In this document: piece by piece, positions 5,821 through 30,260 of the stretch
Layout: each line of letters starts with the position of its first letter
How positions within the stretch are numbered: the stretch's first letter is position 1
Source: Octopus bimaculoides
Taxonomy: Eukaryota
Assembly (NCBI RefSeq): GCF_001194135.2
Contig: NC_068994.1
Coordinates: 30,325,022 to 30,372,180, forward strand
Reading direction: 5' to 3'
Length of the DNA: 47,159 nucleotides
Position numbers and translations under genes: made by a program
The notes under the pieces: generated by a model
What the model saw: the letters and a program-made list of their open reading frames with translations, nothing else
Told to the model about the DNA's origin: nothing
Database searches by the model: none

Positions 5821-6806
5821 ATATTTCGCTCTGTGAGGAGAAGGAAATTGTTTATGTCCATCATGTTCAATTTATTAATTGTAATCTCTCTCTCCTCTCC
5901 CTCTCGCTCTTTCTATCTGTTTGTGTATATTTCTACTCGTACGTGTACTTGTGTGTATGTGTGCATGTGTTTATGTGTGCGTGTGTATATATGAGTGCAT
6001 CAGTGTAAAAAGTGACCAGGACTTCAAGAGTTGAAGTTTACTGTTGCAACAAACTCTAGAATCTAAAGAAATTGAATTGGCTGTCTATGAAGGACGAACA
6101 CTACAAGTAATATGGCAAGAACTACTTGGTTGCTCGATCTACCAGAAATACAGCCAAATCGCCCTTTAAATCGTATCCACTATCTTAGAAAGGAAGCACA
6201 TATTGTATAAGGTAGGCCAGTTATTCAAAACCGGAAAAAAAGGCACCCCACGCAAAAAATACAAAAAAAAAAAAACCGGTGGGAAGGCCACAACATTGAC
6301 CTACGAATAAACGACTGTCACCACAAGCACAACTGTTACCACTGCCACCTCCACAACCACCAATATCACCATCACCACCACGGCCACCACCACGGCCACC
6401 ACCACCACCACCACCACTACCGCCACTCCCTGCTGGATTGTTCATTATATTCCTTAGCTTGGCTGAACTATGCTATATCGGCAACAAGGATCTTAAAGGT
6501 CAATTAGTCGTTCGGTCGAAGGGCTGCCGGATAAGAATTGATCTAAGGTTACGCAACAATAACAGCAATTGAATACCTCTCACCATCTCTTCATAAAAAG
6601 TTGTACTTGTAATGGTTTCTTTAAATAAGCAGAAGCAAAGAAGTTTGCTGGGAGGGGAGCGGTCAATTACATCGATTCAGTACATGATTAGTATTTTATT
6701 TTAACGATTGCGGAAAGATGAAAAGCTTAGTTTTTGGTGAAATTAAAACTCGAAATGTAAAGAGCCGGAATAAATACTGTAAGGTTTTTTGGTCGACGTT
6801 CTAACG

Positions 6807-9242: not shown

Positions 9243-9353
9243 TCTACTACTACTACTACTACTTCCACTACCACGACCATCATCACTACCACCACCACTA
9301 CTACTACTACAATTACTACCACCACCACTACTACTACTACCACCACCACCACA

Positions 9354-9385
<32 letters not shown>

Positions 9386-9515
9386 CACAACTACTACTAC
9401 TACTACTACTACTTCCACTACCACCACCACTACTACTACTACTACAATTACTACCACCATCACAACTACTACTATTACTACTACTACTACTATTACTACC
9501 ATCACCACCACCACA

Positions 9516-9575
<60 letters not shown>

Positions 9576-9710
9576 GCCACTGCCGCCACAACGAATATTA
9601 CGTATAACCATTAAAATCACCACCTCCGTCATGTTATTGCTTCCATGACCACATCTCGCCAGCATTGTCAAAGCTCCCCCCCCCCACAACTACCACCACC
9701 ACCACCACCG

Positions 9711-9745
<35 letters not shown>
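9243..9745. repeat. Long imperfect (CTA)n/(CCA)n trinucleotide arrays (9243-9590 and 9690-9745)
   Basis: Direct reading; produces poly-T/V/L/S ORFs in several frames. Confidence 0.95.
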
Positions 9746-10071: not shown

Positions 10072-10105
<34 letters not shown>

Positions 10106-11149
10106 GCATCGTCAGCTAACTTAATACCAATATTTACTATCCCCACCAGCGACATACTACTAGTTCACCGCTCCCACTACCAATTCCCTCACCGTTGTGA
10201 CTACTACTCAATGAATGCTACGACCACTTTTGCTGCTACCATTACCAACACCACAACACTGACTACGATTTCACAATTACCACCGTTACTACCTCCGCAC
10301 TTCCCATTCCTCTAACAACCACCGCCCTCCACTCCCTCACTATCACAACTATATACGCCGCCGCCAACATGATAACGCTTTACTACCATCACTTCCACCA
10401 CCACCAACACCGATACCAACAATGCAGCTGCCGCCTCCACCATCTAACTAATCATTACCGGTACCGTAACTATAACCACCACCACCGCTACCATCATACC
10501 AGTTCACTACTGCCACAATCGCCACCAGCACCAGCAGAGCAACCTTCAGCACCTCCTCCATCTCTAAAGCAAAGTGCAAAATATGTGTCGGAACCTTCAC
10601 GAAGGAGCAAATGAACGAACTAATGAATGAATGAAAGCATTAATGAATAAGAGAAAGCAAGAAGAACGGAGAGAAAGAAAGAAAGAAAGAAAAGAAGGAA
10701 GAAAGGAAGGACTAGAGGGTAGGTCATTAGAAGTCTTCTTAAAAAAAAAAAAAACTCAAGTGTTACTTATCGTAACAAAAAATAAATAAATAAAAACACA
10801 AACTTTATTATGAAAGGTCAAGAATCACTTCTTCGACAAATGATATTCAGTGTTCAAGTCTGACCGGCGTTAGACCATGAATATGGTAACGCTTCTATGA
10901 CTATTCAATATGATTGGTCAGAATTAAACTCTCAACGATATCTCTCTTAGCACACACATACACACACACACAAAACATATTCTTAATTCATGTTTCCAAA
11001 TAATGCTTCTGCAGGAGAGGATTTTGGTTAATGTCAGAAATTATCAACATCATAATTATGGACACTAATTATCTTAAGTAAAATTAGTAAATGGCTGTTT
11101 AGTTTTATTGTACCAGGCCTCCTTTTTTTTGTCCATTTATTGTTATTGT

Positions 11150-13724: not shown

Positions 13725-14651
13725 GTTATATTCTGGTTATGCAAGGTCTAGATTAGGCAGGGTTAGGCAGCACTTTCAGCCTCTCAAGTTTGTGCTGGGG
13801 CATTGTCATACTGTAGGAGTGCATGTCTCTGACTGACCACTACTGAGTAGCAGGGTTTCAAAGCATCATATAACTTGTTAGCATTGTTTAGCATAAAGGT
13901 CTGTGTTCACAACATGACTATCTGGGATAAACTCTAAGTGCAACTCCCCCACGAAATTCTACCAAACACACAACGTGACCTTTTCTTCAAACTGTCTTTG
14001 TTTGACAACAACTTCCGAAACCTGGCTGGAATGAAGCCACTGATTTCTCTTAATTAGGATTATGAAAATAGATCCATCTTTTATCCCCAGTTATAATTTG
14101 ATGCCAAAATGGGCATCTTGAAGATTTGCCAGCAGTTGTTTGCAAATGTTCACATGTTGAGCCTGGTCATCGGTCATTTCATGAGGAACTTCTTGACAGT
14201 GTCTGCTCGTAAGTCCAAGCTTACGGAAGTGTCGATTGATGATGCTCTGTGATGGACCAAGTTCTGCTGACAATGTACAAGTGCTTGTACTTAGCTGTTG
14301 TTCACTCATTTCAAGCAAGGCCTCATCTTCCATAACAGGAAGTCTCCCTGAACTTGGTTTGTCTTCAAGGCTGGTGTCACCTTCCTTAATGTCTGAACCA
14401 ATTTTGTGCCCTAAGTTCGTTGACAGTTCCCGGGCCTTCCATATCATTAATTTCATTTGCTGTTTCCTTTGCATTCAATCCTTTTTTCTACAGGTAGTGT
14501 AAAATGGCTCTAATTACAATTTTTTCACCACTCATTATCAAAATATTAAAATGAACAATAAACAATTAATGTTTTTGTGTTTTGTATGAAGATAAAGAAT
14601 AAACAATTCAGCAATGATTGGACATCAAGTTGTATCAAATTAATGATATAA
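13725..14651 (-). mobile_element. Old, degraded mariner transposon remnant
   Basis: ORF 14091-14474 has LEDKPSSGRLP and QEVPHEMT (WVPHEL-like). Frameshifted continuation gives IITGDKRWIY, KVTLCVW, LLQYDNAPA and a decayed PHPAYSPDLAP-like motif. TCAGGTTG TIR-like end at about 14651. Confidence 0.8.
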
Positions 14652-22098: not shown

Positions 22099-23139
22099 GT
22101 GTGTGTATGTATGTATGTGTGTGTGTGTGCATATGTGTGTGTGTATCAAAGGAAGTTATTTTATGGCATTTTTTCATTTGAAAAAACAAAGTTGTCAACT
22201 CGACATATATGGGATCATATGATTGTTCGTTAATTTCCGTAAAATTCTTTTAATTTCTTTAGGCTTTGAAGAGAGCACCTGACAAAACACCCCTTCAATC
22301 ACTCTCTCTTCCTCTCTCTTTCTCACACACATGTCCATTTCATATACACGTACATACATCTTTCATTTTCTCCTCTCTTTCACTTTAAAACAAAAGTAAA
22401 TAAATAAAAATTTTTTATGGAATTTAACAAATGCAGATGACAGCTCTGGAAGTCAAAATGAAAGATCACCTAAGCAACTTTCTTTATTGTGATACAGATA
22501 TGACTAATTTGGTGAAACATTACTTTCATTATTCACACATCGTCAGTCTTGTAAGCGAACACTGTAATTTTGGTTGAAATTGAAAGTGGGGAAATTTTCA
22601 CTTTCAATGAAACCTCCTAATTGTTGTAACTTTCAATATCAGTGCATTTCACTGTTGGGTGAGTGGGGGTGGGGGGAAAGTCTCATATACTAAGACACAC
22701 AGAGACATACATTAACACACACCTCAAGCCTATCTCTGTCCCTCTGTGTGCCTGTCTGTGTCTTTTGATGTGTGTGTGTATGTGTGTGTCTGTCATCACA
22801 AAAATGTATGTATACTGACACACAGAAACACCATCACACACATACTTGTCAGTCATTGGCCTAATGTACATAACGAGCATGCAAACACATAGAAAATGTG
22901 ACGTCGTTGTTGTGGTGTTGGTGGTGGTAAAAAATGTTGTTTACGATAGATGACTAAATGAAAAATGATAATCTTAAAATTTTGTAATGCAAATAAGTGA
23001 ATGAAAAGATAGTTTAGTTGGTAGCCAAAAGCTGACTAAATCTTTTGATACCCCATACGTGAAAAACAGCAATTTGGTTTTGGAAAACATAAGGATATAT
23101 GTGATAAGCAGGAGGAGGTATAATCAATGGCGAGTATCA

Positions 23140-23514: not shown

Positions 23515-24830
23515 GAGCTCATTTTTGCCAGGTGACTTACTTGTCATCTCAGTTTTTTGTCATCTGTTCTATGAGGCTCAACACCCTGAGGTCATTCTTC
23601 ACCATTTCATCCTACAGTTTTGAGCCTCCCTCTTTCACAGATCCCATCCATATTTAGTGATCGGCACTTCTTTATGTCATCATCCATATGTCTCATGGCT
23701 ATACCAGTACAATCTTCTGTCTTGCGCATTACATCTCGTACCTTTTCTGTCTAATTTTCCTCTCAACACTTTTACACTTGTCATATATGCACACTGATAT
23801 TGCACATCCAGCAGAGCATGATGGCTTCATTTCTTTCTAGTCTAGACATATTACCTGCACTCACAGACCATGTTTTACTACTATGTAGCATTGCTGTTCA
23901 CACACAAGTATCATACAATCTGCCATTGACTCTAAATGAAAGGCCTTTTGTTACCAACAGAACCTTGAACTTTCTTCATCCTATTGCTGTTCTAACAACT
24001 ATACTTTCTGAACCTCCTCCTCCACTGCAAATTAGAGCACCTAGATAACAAAAGCTATCTCTTACCTCTTGCAAACTTTCTTGGCATTTGAGAAAGTCAA
24101 TTTCCTGCGTGTCCTTAGTGTTTATTGCTGTTGCACACTTGTCACAAACATAGTGAACTCTCTCTGATAACCTTCCTGTGATTGTACTCTTATATGCCCA
24201 TAATTTGCACTGGGTACACTATATGGAATATCTGCCTACACCTTTCCAAATATTGAACAGGGCCATTTTCCTGATGGGTGGAGCATCCTCCTTCTTTCCC
24301 TGATTGTCTGTTCAGGTAACTAGGTCATATCTTGGACCATCAAATATTTCAAGCAACTTAGTGGTGATTCCTGATGGATTAAGGGCTTTTCCTACCTTCA
24401 TTTCTTTAATTGTTTAGTCTGTCATACTGCTGTCCACCTGAATAGCTGGTCTCTCTGTTGGGTCCACATTGGGAACACTAAAGGCAAACACCATTATCCA
24501 TCTGTAAACCTGTCTCTCCTACAACACCTCACTTCTCTCTGATATACTGTCTTGCAATCAGGAACATCTCACATCTCTGGCTCTCACAATTTGGTAAGAC
24601 TCTTTCTTTCTGTAGCTTCCTTTGCTTGATAAGCCTGTTGCCCAGTTTCCTTTCTAGTTATGTGGTACATTCTTCACTGGCTCCATTTTCCCAGTCTTTC
24701 CAAGTGTTTCTCTTTGCTTTATGGCCCTGTTTACCTCACTGTTCCACCACCATATCACCCTCAGTCTGGCTGGAACTTTGCATCAGCTACAGATTTGCTT
24801 GTCCCTCTATCATACTTTATCGTTCAACAT
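23515..24830 (-). mobile_element. Degraded RTE-clade LINE with a large internal deletion removing the RT core
   Basis: Fragments VIWWWNSEVNRAIK, IKEMKVGKALNPSGIT, CTQCKLW...YVCDKC, FCYLGALI, GRLYDTCV, MLCWMCNISVH; many stops and frameshifts. Confidence 0.85.
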
Positions 24831-24904
24831 CCAGCATTAAGCCCACTCTATTAAATACATTCCCATTCAATTGAGGGAGCTTTTACCTTTACCTTTTCCT
24901 TTCT

Positions 24905-25090
24905 TTACTTGGTTACCTCACGAGTGTTATGAAAGAAAGCACCCAATACACACTAGCATTAGTCAGGGCATCCAGCCATGGAAAATATGCCAAATTGACA
25001 TTTGGGCCTGATGCAGCTATGTGACTTGTTAAATCCTGTCAAATTGTCCAACTCATGCCAGCATGAAAATGAATTTTAAATGATGGTGGT
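24905..25090 (+). mobile_element. RTE LINE 3' UTR fragment
   Basis: AAAGCACCCAATACAC...GGGCATCCAGCC...CCAACTCATGCCAGCATG...TAAATGATGGTG. Confidence 0.6.
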
Positions 25091-26259
25091 GAATTGGTAG
25101 AATCGTTAAAGTATTGGACAAAATGCCTTGCAGTATTTAGCTATGATTCTTTAAATGTTTGAAGTTCAAATCACATTAAGGTCAACTTTGATTTTCAGCC
25201 TTCTGGGGTTAATGAAATAAAGTACCACTCAAGAAGGAACTTGGTTTGGCTGGCTTTGTGCCTAAATTTGAAATAATTATTAAATAATTTCCTCATTCTT
25301 GTCAGTAATCTTTGTTTTTTATTTGATTTCAGAAAAAACTGTTTGAAAACATGTCTGCTCAAGTGAAAATCAGGAGAAGACCAGTAACAACAACAACATC
25401 AGGAACAAGTTGACAAATAATTTACTGGAAGTACATCATGTTCAGAAATTTGATACCACCCTGGAGCTAGTATTTTGTAGATGGTGGCTGTCTTTTGTGA
25501 TGCAGTTGAAAATGGCTGCCTGCAGCTTTTGCAAATGATCTGTCGCAACCAGACAAGAGACTTATACTGGTTTGAGTGGAAACTACATGCCTTCATGAAA
25601 GATTCCTAATTTTTAGTTTCATTCTTCTTTTTTTGTTTGAAAATGATTTCTTGATTTGTTTGAAAATGTGAGCCTCTCACCCCCTAACTGCCCATGTCTC
25701 AATCTTTTGCTGTTTGTGATTGTGTAAAAAAGAAAGGAATTCATGTGTAAATCCTATTATTTCCTACTTGTAGCCACAATTATTGTGATGGTTCAGTGTC
25801 TGTAAGCACCATAACCATAGAAATTCAGTTGGTCTGACAACTAAATTTGATATTTGTTGTCAATATATTTTATTTATTGACTCATTAATATTTTCAATCT
25901 TTTATTTACAAAAATATTTTGTTTATTAAAAATTTTTTTTTTGTGTCTGTGCAGAAGTACTAAATTAGTATGAGAGAAGAGGAATTATAAACTCCTGAAT
26001 GAATAGTTAGCAAACTCACAATCAGAAAAGCAAAAATGGAAAGTTACTGATTCCCATCCACTACCAGCACCACTACCTATCATTTAATTTCTTAATTTCA
26101 GATTTAAGTGTACTTGTGTCATTGTTGTCCTACCATCCAATGGTTTACTGCTGATCTATTTGTGTTGTCTTTATACATTTCATTATACCTATTTTGTTTC
26201 CTTTTTATATTTTATCTGTTCTGTCTCCTGTTCCCCATCTGACACTGAATGAAGACATC

Positions 26260-27957
26260 ATGTATTCCATGGAACGGTTGTTTGTGTGTGACATCTGTCA
26301 CCAGGTCTTTCAACGGAGTTCTATTCTAGATAATCACATGCGAGCTCATGACGGAGAGAAACCATACAATGACTGTTCTTCCACTTACCAAGAGCTGCAA
26401 GCTGATGCAACCATTGACACTGTTGCTCAAATCCATGCAGCCGAACAAGAGAGTACAGAGAATATGCTGACTAACATTGTTGGGGAAGAAAGTGATCTTG
26501 CTGACCCTAACTCACCAACTGTATCTCTACCAGACTTTGCTCCCCCATCTCCTACAACTCAGATTGTTACTAATGACAAAGACCAAATGTTCCTCACTGA
26601 CCTGACAGACATTGGTGATTGTGAATCTATTAACCAGCTATACACTTGTAAGATTTGCATGGAGATTTTTACCCATCCAGTTTTACTTAGGCAACATTCG
26701 GAAATAGTTCATCCAAAGGAATATGGGAAAGCAAAGATGTTTGTGTGTGATATCTGCCAGAAAGCTTTCCCGGATAACTCTCAGTTAAAAAGACATGTAC
26801 GTATCCATTCAGAGGAGAGACCATTTGTTTGTATCATATGTTCAAAAGGTTTTCGCACCACTGCTCATTTGAAACGCCATTCCTGGATGCACACAAATCA
26901 ACGACCTTATGCCTGCAAAATCTGTGGGAAATCATTTTCTGATAATTCACACCTAAAACGTCATAGCTGGTCCCATAGTGAAAATAAACCATTTCCATGT
27001 GAACTTTGTTCGAAACAGTTTACGGACCGGTCACATTTAAAGCGGCATCTTCAAATACATTTGAACGATCGACCATTTACTTGTGATAAGTGTCCGAAAA
27101 CTTTCTCTGACATTTCTCACTTGAGAAGACATACTAAGGGCCACATCACAGAGAAAATCTTCCAGTGCCCTGTATGTTCAAAAACTTTTATGGATCAATC
27201 ATATCTAAACAGACATGCACGAACACATGTCATCAAAAAGAGTTTTGACTGCTTGGAATGTGGCAAGAACTTTTCTGATCGGTCCCATCTCAAACGCCAT
27301 GCTGTTATGCATTCTGACAATAAACCCTTCCAATGTAGCATGTGTCCTAAATCTTTTGTGGACAGTTATCATTTGAGGAGGCATAGCAAGACACACTCAG
27401 AAGTCAAACCATATTCTTGCTATGTATGTGGCAAGTGTTTTGTTGACAACTCTCACTTGAAGCGACATGCTAGGACACATTCCAGTGAAAGACCCTTTAA
27501 ATGTGAAACATGTAACAAAGGCTTCTTAGATAGGTCTCATCTTAAACGACATGCACAAACCCATTCAGATAACCGGAAGCCTTTTGGCTGTGATATCTGC
27601 GGCAAGTACTTTTCTGATATGTCTCATGTCAAAAGACACCGCAAAACCCATTATGATGAACGCCCTTATCCATGCCATGAATGTGACAAATCCTTTATGA
27701 CTTCATCACACTTGAAACGCCACCTGCTTTGCCATTCAGAAAATAAACCTTATCCTTGTGATCAATGTGACAAAACATTCTCTGACAGTTCCCATTTAAA
27801 GCGTCACTCTCAGACACACTCCATTGAGCAGCCGCCCAGCTGTGGAATCTGCAATAAGACTTTTTCAAGCAATTCCATTCTGAAGCGACACATGCAAGTG
27901 CACACTAATCAAATTCTTCTGAATGTAGGTTATTTACTTGCTACAGATATAGTGTAA
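26260..27957 (+). CDS. C2H2 zinc-finger protein: 16 fingers (2 isolated plus a 14-finger tandem array), acidic spacer, no KRAB/SCAN/BTB/ZAD recognised; 565 aa if unspliced
   Basis: Uninterrupted ORF with 16 C-x2-C-x12-H-x3/4-H motifs. First ATG at 26260 (MYSMERLF...; second ATG at 26269); the track's 26194 start is a TTG in pyrimidine-rich sequence. Acceptor-like TTTCAG at 26096-26101. Confidence 0.95.
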   Translation: MYSMERLFVCDICHQVFQRSSILDNHMRAHDGEKPYNDCSSTYQELQADATIDTVAQIHAAEQESTENMLTNIVGEESDLADPNSPTVSLPDFAPPSPTTQIVTNDKDQMFLTDLTDIGDCESINQLYTCKICMEIFTHPVLLRQHSEIVHPKEYGKAKMFVCDICQKAFPDNSQLKRHVRIHSEERPFVCIICSKGFRTTAHLKRHSWMHTNQRPYACKICGKSFSDNSHLKRHSWSHSENKPFPCELCSKQFTDRSHLKRHLQIHLNDRPFTCDKCPKTFSDISHLRRHTKGHITEKIFQCPVCSKTFMDQSYLNRHARTHVIKKSFDCLECGKNFSDRSHLKRHAVMHSDNKPFQCSMCPKSFVDSYHLRRHSKTHSEVKPYSCYVCGKCFVDNSHLKRHARTHSSERPFKCETCNKGFLDRSHLKRHAQTHSDNRKPFGCDICGKYFSDMSHVKRHRKTHYDERPYPCHECDKSFMTSSHLKRHLLCHSENKPYPCDQCDKTFSDSSHLKRHSQTHSIEQPPSCGICNKTFSSNSILKRHMQVHTNQILLNVGYLLATDIV

Positions 27958-29755: not shown

Positions 29756-30260
29756 GTTGTTGCAACACAAAAGAAAACAACCTGAAACATAATCATGCCA
29801 ACACAATTACCATCACCATCACTCATCACAGCACATAATCACATCAAACATCACTATGAACAATAACATTTCCATCACAAACATAAACACATCACACCAC
29901 CATTAACAACAACACCACCACCACCATCAAGAAGCCAACTATTATCTCAGCCACCACCACCACCACCACCACTACCACCACCACCAACAACATCAAGAAG
30001 CCAACTACCATCAAAAAGCTAATTATTATTACCACCACCACCACCACCACCACCACCACGATCACTATTACCATCATTAACACCATCACCTCCATTATCA
30101 CAAACATAATCATGCCAAACATCACTATCATCAACACCCATCAATGACAGTACCACTCCACTACTTTCACCACTACCATTATTATCACCAAACCTCTACC
30201 ACTATCAACAACAGTATGATACCAGTGATTAACACATTAACAACCATGACAACAACAGCA
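29560..30260. repeat. Compound trinucleotide low-complexity region (CAA/CTA/CCA/CAT) with short duplicated units
   Basis: CATCAAGAAGCCAACTA and AAACATAATCATGCCAA each occur twice among the triplet runs. Confidence 0.85.

Follow-up and report, generated by a model that had tools for sequence, protein, structure and literature searches.

To our knowledge, homotypic zinc-finger arrays that read a DNA repeat have so far been an engineered class. The 11-finger ZF11xHunt-KOX1 and mZF-KRAB proteins are aligned to poly(CAG) and repress expanded repeats in vivo; the CAG helix repeated in ZF11xHunt is QRATLQR, and the mouse-adapted version carries QSGDLTR/QSGDRKR (PMC5013590). Engineered zinc-finger arrays have also been directed to GGAA microsatellites (PMC9374162), and natural C2H2 binders of CA/TG microsatellites include ZSCAN4 and ZBTB43 (PMC12539977, PMC9276527; PDB 8ymz). 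Octopus bimaculoides has approximately 1,450 C2H2 sequences, and which DNA sites the C2H2 proteins of cephalopods bind is acknowledged to be an open question (PMC12513265). Here we describe a natural octopus array in which the same base contacts recur in nearly every finger, with Asp or Thr at helix position -1, His at 3 and Arg at 6 (D/T-H-R) in 11 of 14 fingers and Arg at position 6 (R6) in all 14.

The array lies in Octopus bimaculoides GCA_001194135.2 (CM046614.1, ~30.35 Mb), within a stretch of 47,159 nucleotides that was analysed as a whole and is called the window below. Its open reading frame is the sole zinc-finger gene within the 47-kb window. The frame is already open from 26194 (587 codons), and the 565-amino-acid product is read from 26260-27954 (+), with the stop codon at 27955-27957. 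Fingers were parsed on the translated frame with the regular expression C-x2-C-x12-H-x3/4-H, giving 16 C2H2 fingers: F1 and F2 are isolated, and F3 to F16 form 14 tandem fingers with a 28-residue period. The features, with helices written from position -1 to 6 and DNA triplets as predicted from the recognition code, are as follows.

26260..27957, forward strand: open reading frame of the 16-finger C2H2 protein, intact, 565 codons plus stop by translation
26281..26349, forward strand: F1, isolated, helix RSSILDN, from the regular-expression parse
26350..26640, forward strand: acidic low-complexity spacer, residues 31-127, pI 4.05, 20 Asp and Glu against 2 Lys and Arg
26641..26712, forward strand: F2, isolated, H-x4-H spacing, helix HPVLLRQ, from the same parse
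26740..27903, forward strand: tandem array F3-F16, 14 fingers, 28-residue period, pI 9.46
26740..26808, forward strand: F3, helix DNSQLKR (D-Q-R), predicted GAC-like, with Gln at position 3 read by extension from DRSNLTR and DPGNLVR (GAC)
26824..26892, forward strand: F4, helix TTAHLKR (T-H-R), predicted GGT
26908..27144, forward strand: F5-F7, helices DNSHLKR, DRSHLKR and DISHLRR (three D-H-R), predicted GGC three times
27160..27228, forward strand: F8, helix DQSYLNR (D-Y-R), which breaks the pattern, predicted G-?-C
27244..27651, forward strand: F9-F13, helices DRSHLKR, DSYHLRR, DNSHLKR, DRSHLKR and DMSHVKR (five D-H-R), predicted GGC five times
27565..27582, forward strand: SDNRKP between F12 and F13, the sole six-residue linker, the other 12 having five residues
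27667..27735, forward strand: F14, helix TSSHLKR (T-H-R), predicted GGT
27751..27819, forward strand: F15, helix DSSHLKR (D-H-R), predicted GGC
27835..27903, forward strand: F16, helix SNSILKR (S-I-R), with the 5' G alone predicted
27925..27932, forward strand: possible 5' splice donor AAT|GTAGGT, read from sequence, 25 nucleotides before the stop

If the possible donor is used, the 10-residue tail VGYLLATDIV would be intronic and the true C-terminus would lie elsewhere. Gene calling placed no neighbour gene within 10 kb on either side of the zinc-finger frame, and scanning the window for Rfam families and tRNA genes gave no matches. GC content around the frame is 37%, and the window is CpG-depleted (CpG observed/expected 0.49, TpG/CpA 1.25). 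A transposon-borne origin of the gene was considered and rejected, the frame being flanked by microsatellites only, with no terminal direct or inverted repeats. KRAB, SCAN, BTB and ZAD had no Pfam match in the 565-residue product, upstream exons being possible. The acidic spacer likewise had no Pfam domain match and is a candidate effector or activation region.

All 16 fingers follow the ligand spacing C-x2-4-C-x12-H-x3-5-H and all 64 zinc ligands are intact. Pfam zf-C2H2 (PF00096) scored 257.2 bits against a cutoff of 25.2 over 13 stretches, and PF13465 scored 275 bits on the same product. An AlphaFold2 model of F5-F6 (pLDDT 84.9) showed the beta-beta-alpha order twice, with helices at residues 13-23 and 41-52; Asp12 directly precedes the first helix, which places the aspartate at position -1. 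In a Foldseek search with this model, 50 of the 50 PDB matches listed were C2H2 fingers, nearly all in DNA complexes. Searching PDB sequences for a D-x-S-H-L-x-R finger of known structure gave generic arrays only (ZFP568, CTCF, PRDM9, Aart); by name, the nearest precedent is 1a1f, in which the Zif268 variant 'DSNR' sits on a GACC site. By spacing, profile score and predicted fold, the product is assigned to the classical C2H2 (Krueppel-type) class.

The helix pattern was exactly as the first-pass annotation had listed it: D-H-R in nine of the 14 tandem fingers (F5, 6, 7, 9, 10, 11, 12, 13 and 15), T-H-R in two (F4 and F14) and R6 throughout, leaving F3, F8 and F16 as the exceptions (3/14). Positions invariant across the array are C3, C6, K8, F10, R18 (helix position 6), H19 and H23, and the hydrophobic core residues F10 and L16 are invariant or nearly so across the 14 fingers. 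The array is basic and its likely backbone contacts are conserved, Lys8 of the C..C.K.F motif being invariant and Lys or Arg standing at helix position 5 in 13 of 14 fingers. Mean entropy at contact positions -1, 2, 3 and 6 (F3-F16) was 0.69 bits; the lowest value was 1.84 among 65 comparison arrays and 1.14 among 3383 fourteen-finger windows drawn from 270 other poly-zinc-finger proteins, and none of these 3383 windows carried a single residue at position 6 across all 14 fingers. D-H-R occurs in 0.47% of 1899 fingers and 0.16% of 4963 fingers of other long arrays, and a naive binomial gives ~2e-18 for at least nine of 14, though fingers share ancestry. The framework and linker entropies of the array were average to high relative to the comparison arrays, bearing out the earlier description of diverged linkers and beta-hairpins. 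In poly-zinc-finger proteins the base-contacting residues normally diversify and the scaffold is conserved; conservation in the octopus array is inverted with respect to this pattern, which points to a repetitive target. The uniformity of the array is due neither to chance nor to recent duplication.

That selection, rather than recent duplication, maintains the uniformity had been proposed at first reading, and the codons support it. Arg at position 6 is encoded by all six Arg codons (AGA4/CGC3/CGA3/CGT2/CGG1/AGG1), Leu at position 4 by six Leu codons and Asp at -1 by GAT6/GAC5, and each conserved helix residue is likewise written in mixed synonymous codons. Identity between fingers is ~55% at the nucleotide level and ~17% at variable framework residues, and the divergence among fingers is ancient. 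The ratio pN/pS was ~0.2 in the helix and ~0.8 in the variable framework, with pS saturated and over-estimated for two-fold codons. Nei-Gojobori pS exceeded 0.75-1, with synonymous sites saturated and two-fold codons inflating the estimate, so the argument for selection rests on raw codon counts and not on a dS estimate. A DNA-level tandem repeat or gene conversion was rejected, as neither TRF nor the repeat finder saw an 84-nt period across the array. Duplication of a six-finger block (F5-F10 against F11-F16), which looked related by eye, was also rejected (offset-6 diagonal identity 0.20 against ~0.17 overall at 11 variable framework positions; permutation p = 0.22). By contrast, in a control array whose helices are uniform by recent duplication (P0115), finger DNA is 93-100% identical over four canonically spaced copies. 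The codon evidence thus indicates that purifying selection holds the 14-finger octopus array to one recognition surface.

The proposal that T-H-R reads GGT follows the Barbas GNN modules, in which T-x-x-H-x-x-R corresponds to GGT. Its companion, that D-H-R reads GGC, agrees with two engineered helices, DRSHLTR (Sangamo-type), tabulated as a GGC binder beside DRSNLTR for GAC (PMC4685226), and DPGHLVR (Barbas GNN set), tabulated as a GGC binder beside DPGNLVR for GAC (PMC7317221). On the code, the best reading is therefore a (GGC)n-like target with GGT as two of its triplets. The predicted site, running from F16 to F3, would be 5'-GNN GGC GGT GGC GGC GGC GGC GGC GNC GGC GGC GGC GGT GAC-3'. The contiguous 42-bp site first suggested is an upper bound only, long zinc-finger arrays being reported in a preprint often to yield short motifs (bioRxiv 10.1101/637298). 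We found no GGC runs of at least four units in the 47-kb window, where the only GG[C/T] runs were (GGT)n on the reverse strand, read as (ACC)n on the forward one; with CpG so depleted across the window, tracts of GGC, which carry CpG, would be expected to be few and unstable. An analogy with CTCF, in which Asp at -1 would exclude methylated cytosine, survives in part. The rule that Asp selects unmodified C, and Glu 5mC, stands, CTCF Asp451 reading unmodified C, and the placement at -1 does not: the published numbering, which runs backwards from the first zinc-binding His, gives -1 to Val454 (PMC10484683), so by our conversion Asp451 falls at canonical helix position 3 of ZF7.

The linkers depart from the TGEKP type. 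The 13 linkers in order are SEERP, TNQRP, SENKP, LNDRP, ITEKI, VIKKS, SDNKP, SEVKP, SSERP, SDNRKP, YDERP, SENKP and SIEQP. High-affinity DNA-binding arrays typically have such linkers, although these do not strictly define the class; here Gly stands at position 2 in none of the 13 and Thr at position 1 in one, against 74% and 70% of control linkers (n=4183). Of the 13, 12 still have Lys or Arg at position 4 and 11 still have Pro at position 5, and the DGEKP after F1 is the only remnant of the canonical type. Periodic extended linkers, which let arrays of more than six fingers keep register on DNA, are also absent, SDNRKP being the single longer one. Between the last His of one finger and the first Cys of the next, 12 of the 13 junctions keep the canonical seven residues. 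With Thr-Gly absent, the DNA-induced linker capping of high-affinity arrays may be missing.

The reading we prefer, to which we give about even weight, is that this is a functional solitary gene whose 14-finger array, under purifying selection, reads (GGC)n-type duplex DNA. Selection would have kept the pattern D(-1)-S(2)-H(3)-L(4)-K(5)-R(6) as a common recognition surface through the drift of all other finger positions. The array would read double-stranded DNA canonically in the major groove, one triplet per finger; in each triplet the 5' G would be contacted by Arg6, the G in the middle by His3 and the C at the 3' end by Asp-1, so that the target would be G-rich, 3-bp-periodic and of (GGC)n type. 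The fingers being nearly interchangeable, any contiguous subset of them could dock in many registers, and longer tracts would show higher occupancy; the effector function would lie in the acidic N-terminal spacer. The identity of the triplet, the use of many fingers, the dependence on length and any effect of CpG methylation are predictions of this reading. In a more ambitious form, which we think rather unlikely, the protein would sense the length of unmethylated (GGC)n/(GGY)n microsatellites in a cephalopod genome, its two Thr(-1) fingers reading GGT as the CpG-deamination product of GGC, and would be the first natural counterpart of the engineered triplet-repeat binders and part of a wider unrecognised class that includes a second array (P0053, below).

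A possible though not favoured alternative is a short-motif, GC-box-type promoter factor and not a microsatellite reader. Three to five neighbouring fingers would then engage a 9-15 bp GGC-rich element, e.g. GGCGGCGGC, and the other fingers would be spare, alternative modules or protein contacts. The short motifs that long arrays frequently give, as the preprint above reports, fit this account, as do linkers without Thr-Gly, the lack of long GGC tracts in 47 kb and the position of F8 (D-Y-R), which divides the array into F4-F7 and F9-F15. However, synonymous sites have diverged to saturation while 11 of the 14 fingers kept the same contact residues and every one kept R6, which would be hard to explain if most fingers never met one kind of sequence.

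Binding to G-rich repeat RNA, single-stranded DNA, or a hairpin or G-quadruplex of GGC/CGG-type repeats, in place of B-form duplex, is improbable. Double-stranded-RNA-type zinc fingers have long linkers, whereas the octopus array keeps the canonical seven-residue His-Cys spacing noted above, and the conserved positions are exactly the duplex-DNA contacts -1, 2, 3 and 6. The absence of the TGEKP Thr-Gly from all linkers would suit such a target, and two further Pfam models also score, zf-met (PF12874) at 104 bits and zf-C2H2_jaz (PF12171) at 99.5 bits; yet PF12171 falls on most, and PF12874 on many, generic poly-zinc-finger matches, so both scores are cross-matches without diagnostic value. Some zinc-finger proteins, e.g. 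Zfp106, do bind G-quadruplex RNA repeats (PMC11295049), but the structural neighbours of the octopus model are C2H2 fingers, nearly all solved with DNA.

The highest identity in any protein search was 45%. Orthologue and paralogue searches with the full protein, the N-terminal 183 residues and a two-finger profile returned generic or giant zinc-finger proteins or nothing, and a HMMER scan of 1.84 billion representatives gave generic or giant zinc-finger matches with no close relative. The N-terminal 183 residues had no detectable relatives in these searches, and the exact 565-residue protein was absent from a 15-billion-protein collection. No cephalopod protein was named among the matches listed, many of which are nameless, so the databases may lack cephalopod proteins. 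An unexpressed frame or young pseudogene would agree with this absence, with the lack of detectable relatives for the N-terminal region and with the fact that neither a transcript nor an annotated protein was found, but we consider it highly improbable: a 587-codon frame at 37% GC that preserves every one of 64 zinc ligands as well as the Phe/Leu core is unexpected without purifying selection, and the missing entries probably reflect database content. That the uniformity is a historical accident of recent tandem duplication or gene conversion, with no selected function, is scarcely credible, for although such arrays occur (in P0115, nine fingers are T-R-R and eight of them share the helix TRSRLKR), the ~0.55 nucleotide and ~17% framework identities of the octopus fingers, all six Arg and six Leu codons at invariant residues and an 84-nt repeat invisible to TRF and the repeat finder already contradict it.

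A second natural, near-uniform array was observed in a 10-finger Q-x-T-N-L-x-N protein of a eukaryote (P0053; ENA ERZ21867824, locus L002). As in the octopus array, contacts recur, with Q-N-N in 6 of 10 fingers, Gln at -1 in 8, Asn at 3 in 8 and Asn at 6 in 9, and codons are scrambled at 58% nucleotide identity. It differs in its canonical TGEKP linkers and in the A-rich target predicted by the code. Together, the two suggest that selection-maintained homotypic arrays recur.

Among described systems, the cephalopod C2H2 expansions involve the same species and superfamily as the octopus array gene (PMC12513265). Lineage-specific expansion clusters comprise many close paralogues, usually in tandem. 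This gene is solitary in 47 kb and had no match above 45% identity in databases that may lack cephalopod proteins. If the (GGC)n reading is true, one of the ~1,450 octopus C2H2 proteins (PMC12513265) would gain a first concrete DNA target; if it fails, the inverted conservation pattern would still want explanation. The engineered GGC modules share the contacts Asp -1, His 3 and Arg 6 with the octopus fingers, and DRSHLTR differs from the octopus helix DRSHLKR (F6, F9, F12) at position 5 only. Engineers mount those modules on Zif268 or Sp1C frameworks, join them by TGEKP linkers and combine different specificities in arrays of 3-6 fingers. The octopus array is a natural one that repeats the helix in 9-11 of its 14 fingers, and its linkers are not of the TGEKP type. 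ZSCAN4 and ZBTB43 have few fingers (four in ZSCAN4, PMC12539977), dinucleotide targets and SCAN or BTB domains, unlike the octopus product, which has neither domain.

The octopus array is real, uniform and maintained by selection, and our analysis suggests that it may read a GGC-type triplet repeat. If so, evolution would have reached the engineers' design for triplet-repeat targeting, and the protein would offer a natural non-TGEKP-linker scaffold for long repeat-reading arrays. ZF11xHunt and the GGAA arrays resemble it as long arrays with repeated helices of one specificity, theirs aligned to a simple repeat. They are man-made, carry KRAB or EWS effectors and have extended TGSQKP spacers after every two fingers that relieve strain, whereas the octopus array has one six-residue linker, no periodic extended linkers and an acidic N-terminal region.

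The locus lies at ~30.35 Mb on Octopus bimaculoides chromosome CM046614.1 (GCA_001194135.2), in an AT-rich window (GC 28-40% per 2-kb window, 37% overall) with abundant microsatellites, assembly gaps and transposon fragments. The zinc-finger open reading frame stands alone, as no second C2H2-encoding sequence was found in six frames of the 47 kb and no neighbouring gene calls were found within 10 kb on each side. A pattern parse of the product identified 16 fingers (F1-F16), located as follows:

26194-27957, + strand: long open frame (first ATG 26260; product of 565 residues)
26281-26349, + strand: F1, isolated N-terminal finger (pattern parse)
26641-26712, + strand: F2, isolated N-terminal finger (pattern parse)
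26740-27903, + strand: F3-F16, fourteen tandem fingers (pattern parse)

The product scored 257 bits against Pfam zf-C2H2 (cutoff 25.2) and was classified from its sequence as a classical C2H2 protein. No KRAB, SCAN, BTB or ZAD domain was found in it with Pfam; the N-terminal spacer (aa 31-127, pI 4.05), which had no Pfam domain match, is a candidate effector region. A 5' splice donor-like sequence (AAT/GTAGGT, 27925-27932) was observed shortly ahead of the stop codon, and read-through into an intron could account for the C-terminal tail VGYLLATDIV.

Helix positions -1, 3 and 6 were D-H-R in F5, 6, 7, 9, 10, 11, 12, 13 and 15, and T-H-R in F4 and F14, with the remaining fingers being D-Q-R (F3), D-Y-R (F8) and S-I-R (F16). 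Position 6 was Arg in 14 of 14 tandem fingers, and what the first-pass annotation had reported of these residues was correct throughout. An AlphaFold2 model of F5-F6 (pLDDT 85) contained the beta-beta-alpha fold twice, and the helix Asp was placed at position -1 because it directly precedes the helix in this model. All 50 of the structural neighbours listed for the model were C2H2 fingers, nearly all in DNA complexes. Lys8 in C..C.K.F was invariant across the array and position 4 was K/R in 12 of 13 linkers (array pI 9.46); these residues are likely DNA backbone contacts retained in the array. The Gly of TGEKP was observed in none of the 13 linkers and the Thr in one, versus 74% and 70% of control linkers (n=4183), and the array contained only one extended linker.

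The D-H-R triple made up 0.47% of 1899 fingers from 120 generic long zinc-finger proteins and 0.16% of 4963 fingers from 150 further proteins. Per-position entropy showed an inverted conservation pattern in the array, in which the DNA-contact positions were nearly uniform while the beta-hairpin, position 1, H-x3-H spacer and linker were at least as variable as in controls.

Entropy at the DNA-contact helix positions (array; control mean)
Position -1: 0.95 bits; 2.54 bits
Position 2: 0.73 bits; 2.33 bits
Position 3: 1.09 bits; 2.73 bits
Position 6: 0.00 bits; 2.53 bits

The mean contact entropy of the array (0.69 bits) was below that of all 65 comparison arrays (minimum 1.84) and of every one of 3383 14-finger windows from 270 proteins (minimum 1.14), and none of these 3383 windows had a single residue at position 6 across 14 fingers.

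Under the standard recognition code of one triplet per finger, Thr-1/His3/Arg6 would specify GGT, as in the Barbas GNN set. The engineered helix DRSHLTR, one residue apart from the octopus DRSHLKR, is tabulated for GGC (PMC4685226), as is DPGHLVR (PMC7317221), while the Asn3 counterparts of both are GAC binders (PMC4685226, PMC7317221); the 'DSNR' Zif268 variant is seen on a GACC site in PDB 1a1f. Read from the C- to the N-terminal finger, the array is predicted to recognise 5'-GNN GGC GGT GGC GGC GGC GGC GGC GNC GGC GGC GGC GGT GAC-3'. Support for this (GGC)n-like target comes entirely from sequence analysis; the proposed mechanism is a reasonable code-based prediction, to which we give about an even chance, on an anatomy that is solid and unusual.

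The main alternative, unlikely in our estimation, is that a subset of the fingers reads a short GGC-rich motif. Short motifs are common from long arrays (bioRxiv 10.1101/637298), and the contiguous 42-bp site of the first-pass interpretation is thus an upper bound. The GGC assignment of that interpretation, which is supported in part, agrees with the engineered helices. No runs of at least four GGC units were found on either strand of the 47-kb window. Ten GG[C/T] runs were observed, all in one orientation, as + strand (ACC)n or GCC(ACC)n, equivalent to (GGT)n of up to nine units on the opposite strand, so the local genome offers (GGT)n rather than (GGC)n tracts. The window is depleted in CpG (o/e 0.49, with a TpG/CpA excess of 1.25), and GGC tracts bearing CpG should therefore decay; speculatively, deamination of GGC to GGT ahead of a G could be a reason for Thr at -1 in two fingers. 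Over the 2 kb that precede the gene (24001-26000) CpG o/e was only 0.05-0.10, an apparent deamination signature that suggests heavy germline methylation of this intergenic stretch.

The analogy earlier drawn with CTCF for methylation sensitivity holds in part: Asp451 does recognise cytosine in its unmodified form, and PMC10484683 gives the general rule 'Asp for C, Glu for 5mC'. In the numbering of that paper, which counts back from the first zinc-binding His, Val454 is position -1, and by our conversion this puts Asp451 at canonical helix position 3 of ZF7 and not at -1.

An RNA or non-B nucleic acid ligand is improbable; the conserved set of -1, 2, 3 and 6 with core Leu4 and Lys5 coincides exactly with the surface through which classical fingers contact duplex DNA. 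We give very little weight to the frame not being expressed. Recent duplication as the source of the uniform helices is essentially refuted by the use of all six Arg codons, the ~17% amino-acid identity at 11 variable framework positions over all finger pairs and the 84-nt period undetected in the array by Tandem Repeats Finder and a repeat finder. The invariant Arg6 is encoded by AGA (4), CGC (3), CGA (3), CGT (2), CGG (1) and AGG (1), Leu4 by six codons, Asp-1 by GAT (6) and GAC (5), Ser2 by TCT (5), TCA (4) and TCC (3), and His3 by CAT (7) and CAC (4). Nucleotide identity between fingers averaged ~0.55, and no signal of higher-order block duplication was detected among them (permutation p = 0.22). 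The helix showed ~0.2 non-synonymous divergence against ~0.6 for the variable framework, and synonymous sites were saturated. The scrambled codons and low finger identity indicate old fingers sharing a recognition surface under purifying selection, as the first-pass annotation had proposed.

A contrast case of duplication-derived uniformity is the comparison protein P0115 (L003 3001-5067, ENA ERZ23491296), with nine T-R-R fingers, eight carrying the identical helix TRSRLKR, in alternation with RKDTLSS fingers. Among the four canonically spaced TRSRLKR copies compared, DNA identity was 93-100%, and the uniformity of this array is therefore attributed to very recent tandem duplication. The 10-finger array of P0053 (L002 3001-5040, ENA ERZ21867824 contig ctg71672l) has near-uniform Q-x-T-N-L-x-N helices (six of the ten fingers carry Q-N-N; eight have Q at -1, eight have N at 3 and nine have N at 6), canonical TGEKP linkers, scrambled codons and 58% nucleotide identity between fingers. 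Judged from its sequence, P0053 is another homotypic array maintained by selection, and the code predicts A-tracts as its target.

GGT-type tracts flank the octopus gene; as the window has further tracts of this kind, any link to the gene is unproven. One lies 3.3 kb upstream (22903-22933, GTTGTTGTGGTGTTGGTGGTGGT, + strand), and an (ACC)n-rich repeat of 84-bp period lies 2 kb downstream (29895-30070; (ACC)n run 29914-30057). A compound triplet microsatellite (9244-9571, 9692-9745, 10072-10105) consists of ~108 (CTA)n units with embedded (ACC)4-6 islands, or (AGT/GGT)n on the minus strand, and further (ACC)n runs were found at 6395-6415 and 10475-10486. Adjoining an assembly gap (37138-37292), head-to-head telomere-type repeats at 37318-37391 comprise ~five (TAACCC) units directly followed by ~seven (TAGGGT), i.e. 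(CCCTAA)n to (TTAGGG)n, and would be an interstitial telomeric fusion point or else an artefact of scaffolding at this gap. A 218-bp unit repeated 2.7 times at 40588-41181 (95% identity, TRF score 1050) gave no hit in Rfam and tRNA scans and is possibly a satellite or tandemly duplicated SINE. Transposon remnants included a Tc1/Tc3-type transposase HTH (PF01498, 51.7 bits) broken by a 461-N gap, a mariner-like ORF fragment without a significant Pfam match and a DUF4371 (hAT/ZBED-like) fragment with a sub-threshold score, at:

375-1379, - strand: transposon remnant
14091-14474, - strand: transposon remnant
44595-45107, - strand: transposon remnant

Large protein searches with the zinc-finger protein returned no match above 45% identity, the N-terminal region had no match in protein databases, and the exact 565-residue protein was absent from a 15-billion-protein collection. 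No cephalopod-attributed protein was among the matches listed, so the poor yield most likely reflects a database gap rather than true absence. PMC12513265 explicitly treats the question of which DNA targets cephalopod C2H2 proteins bind as open. The prediction for the array is cheap to test, and its inverted conservation pattern should be striking to a specialist.

We found no description in the literature of a natural, long, selection-kept homotypic array predicted for a triplet repeat. Natural microsatellite binders ZSCAN4 and ZBTB43 target CA/TG repeats, ZSCAN4 with four fingers (PMC12539977), and engineered long homotypic arrays against simple repeats are already known (PMC5013590; PMC9374162). 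The nearest functional analogue is an engineered 11-finger array whose repeated CAG-binding helices are aligned to poly(CAG) and which represses expanded repeats (PMC5013590). By analogy, the octopus array could dock on a GGC-type tract in many registers, and its occupancy would rise with tract length.
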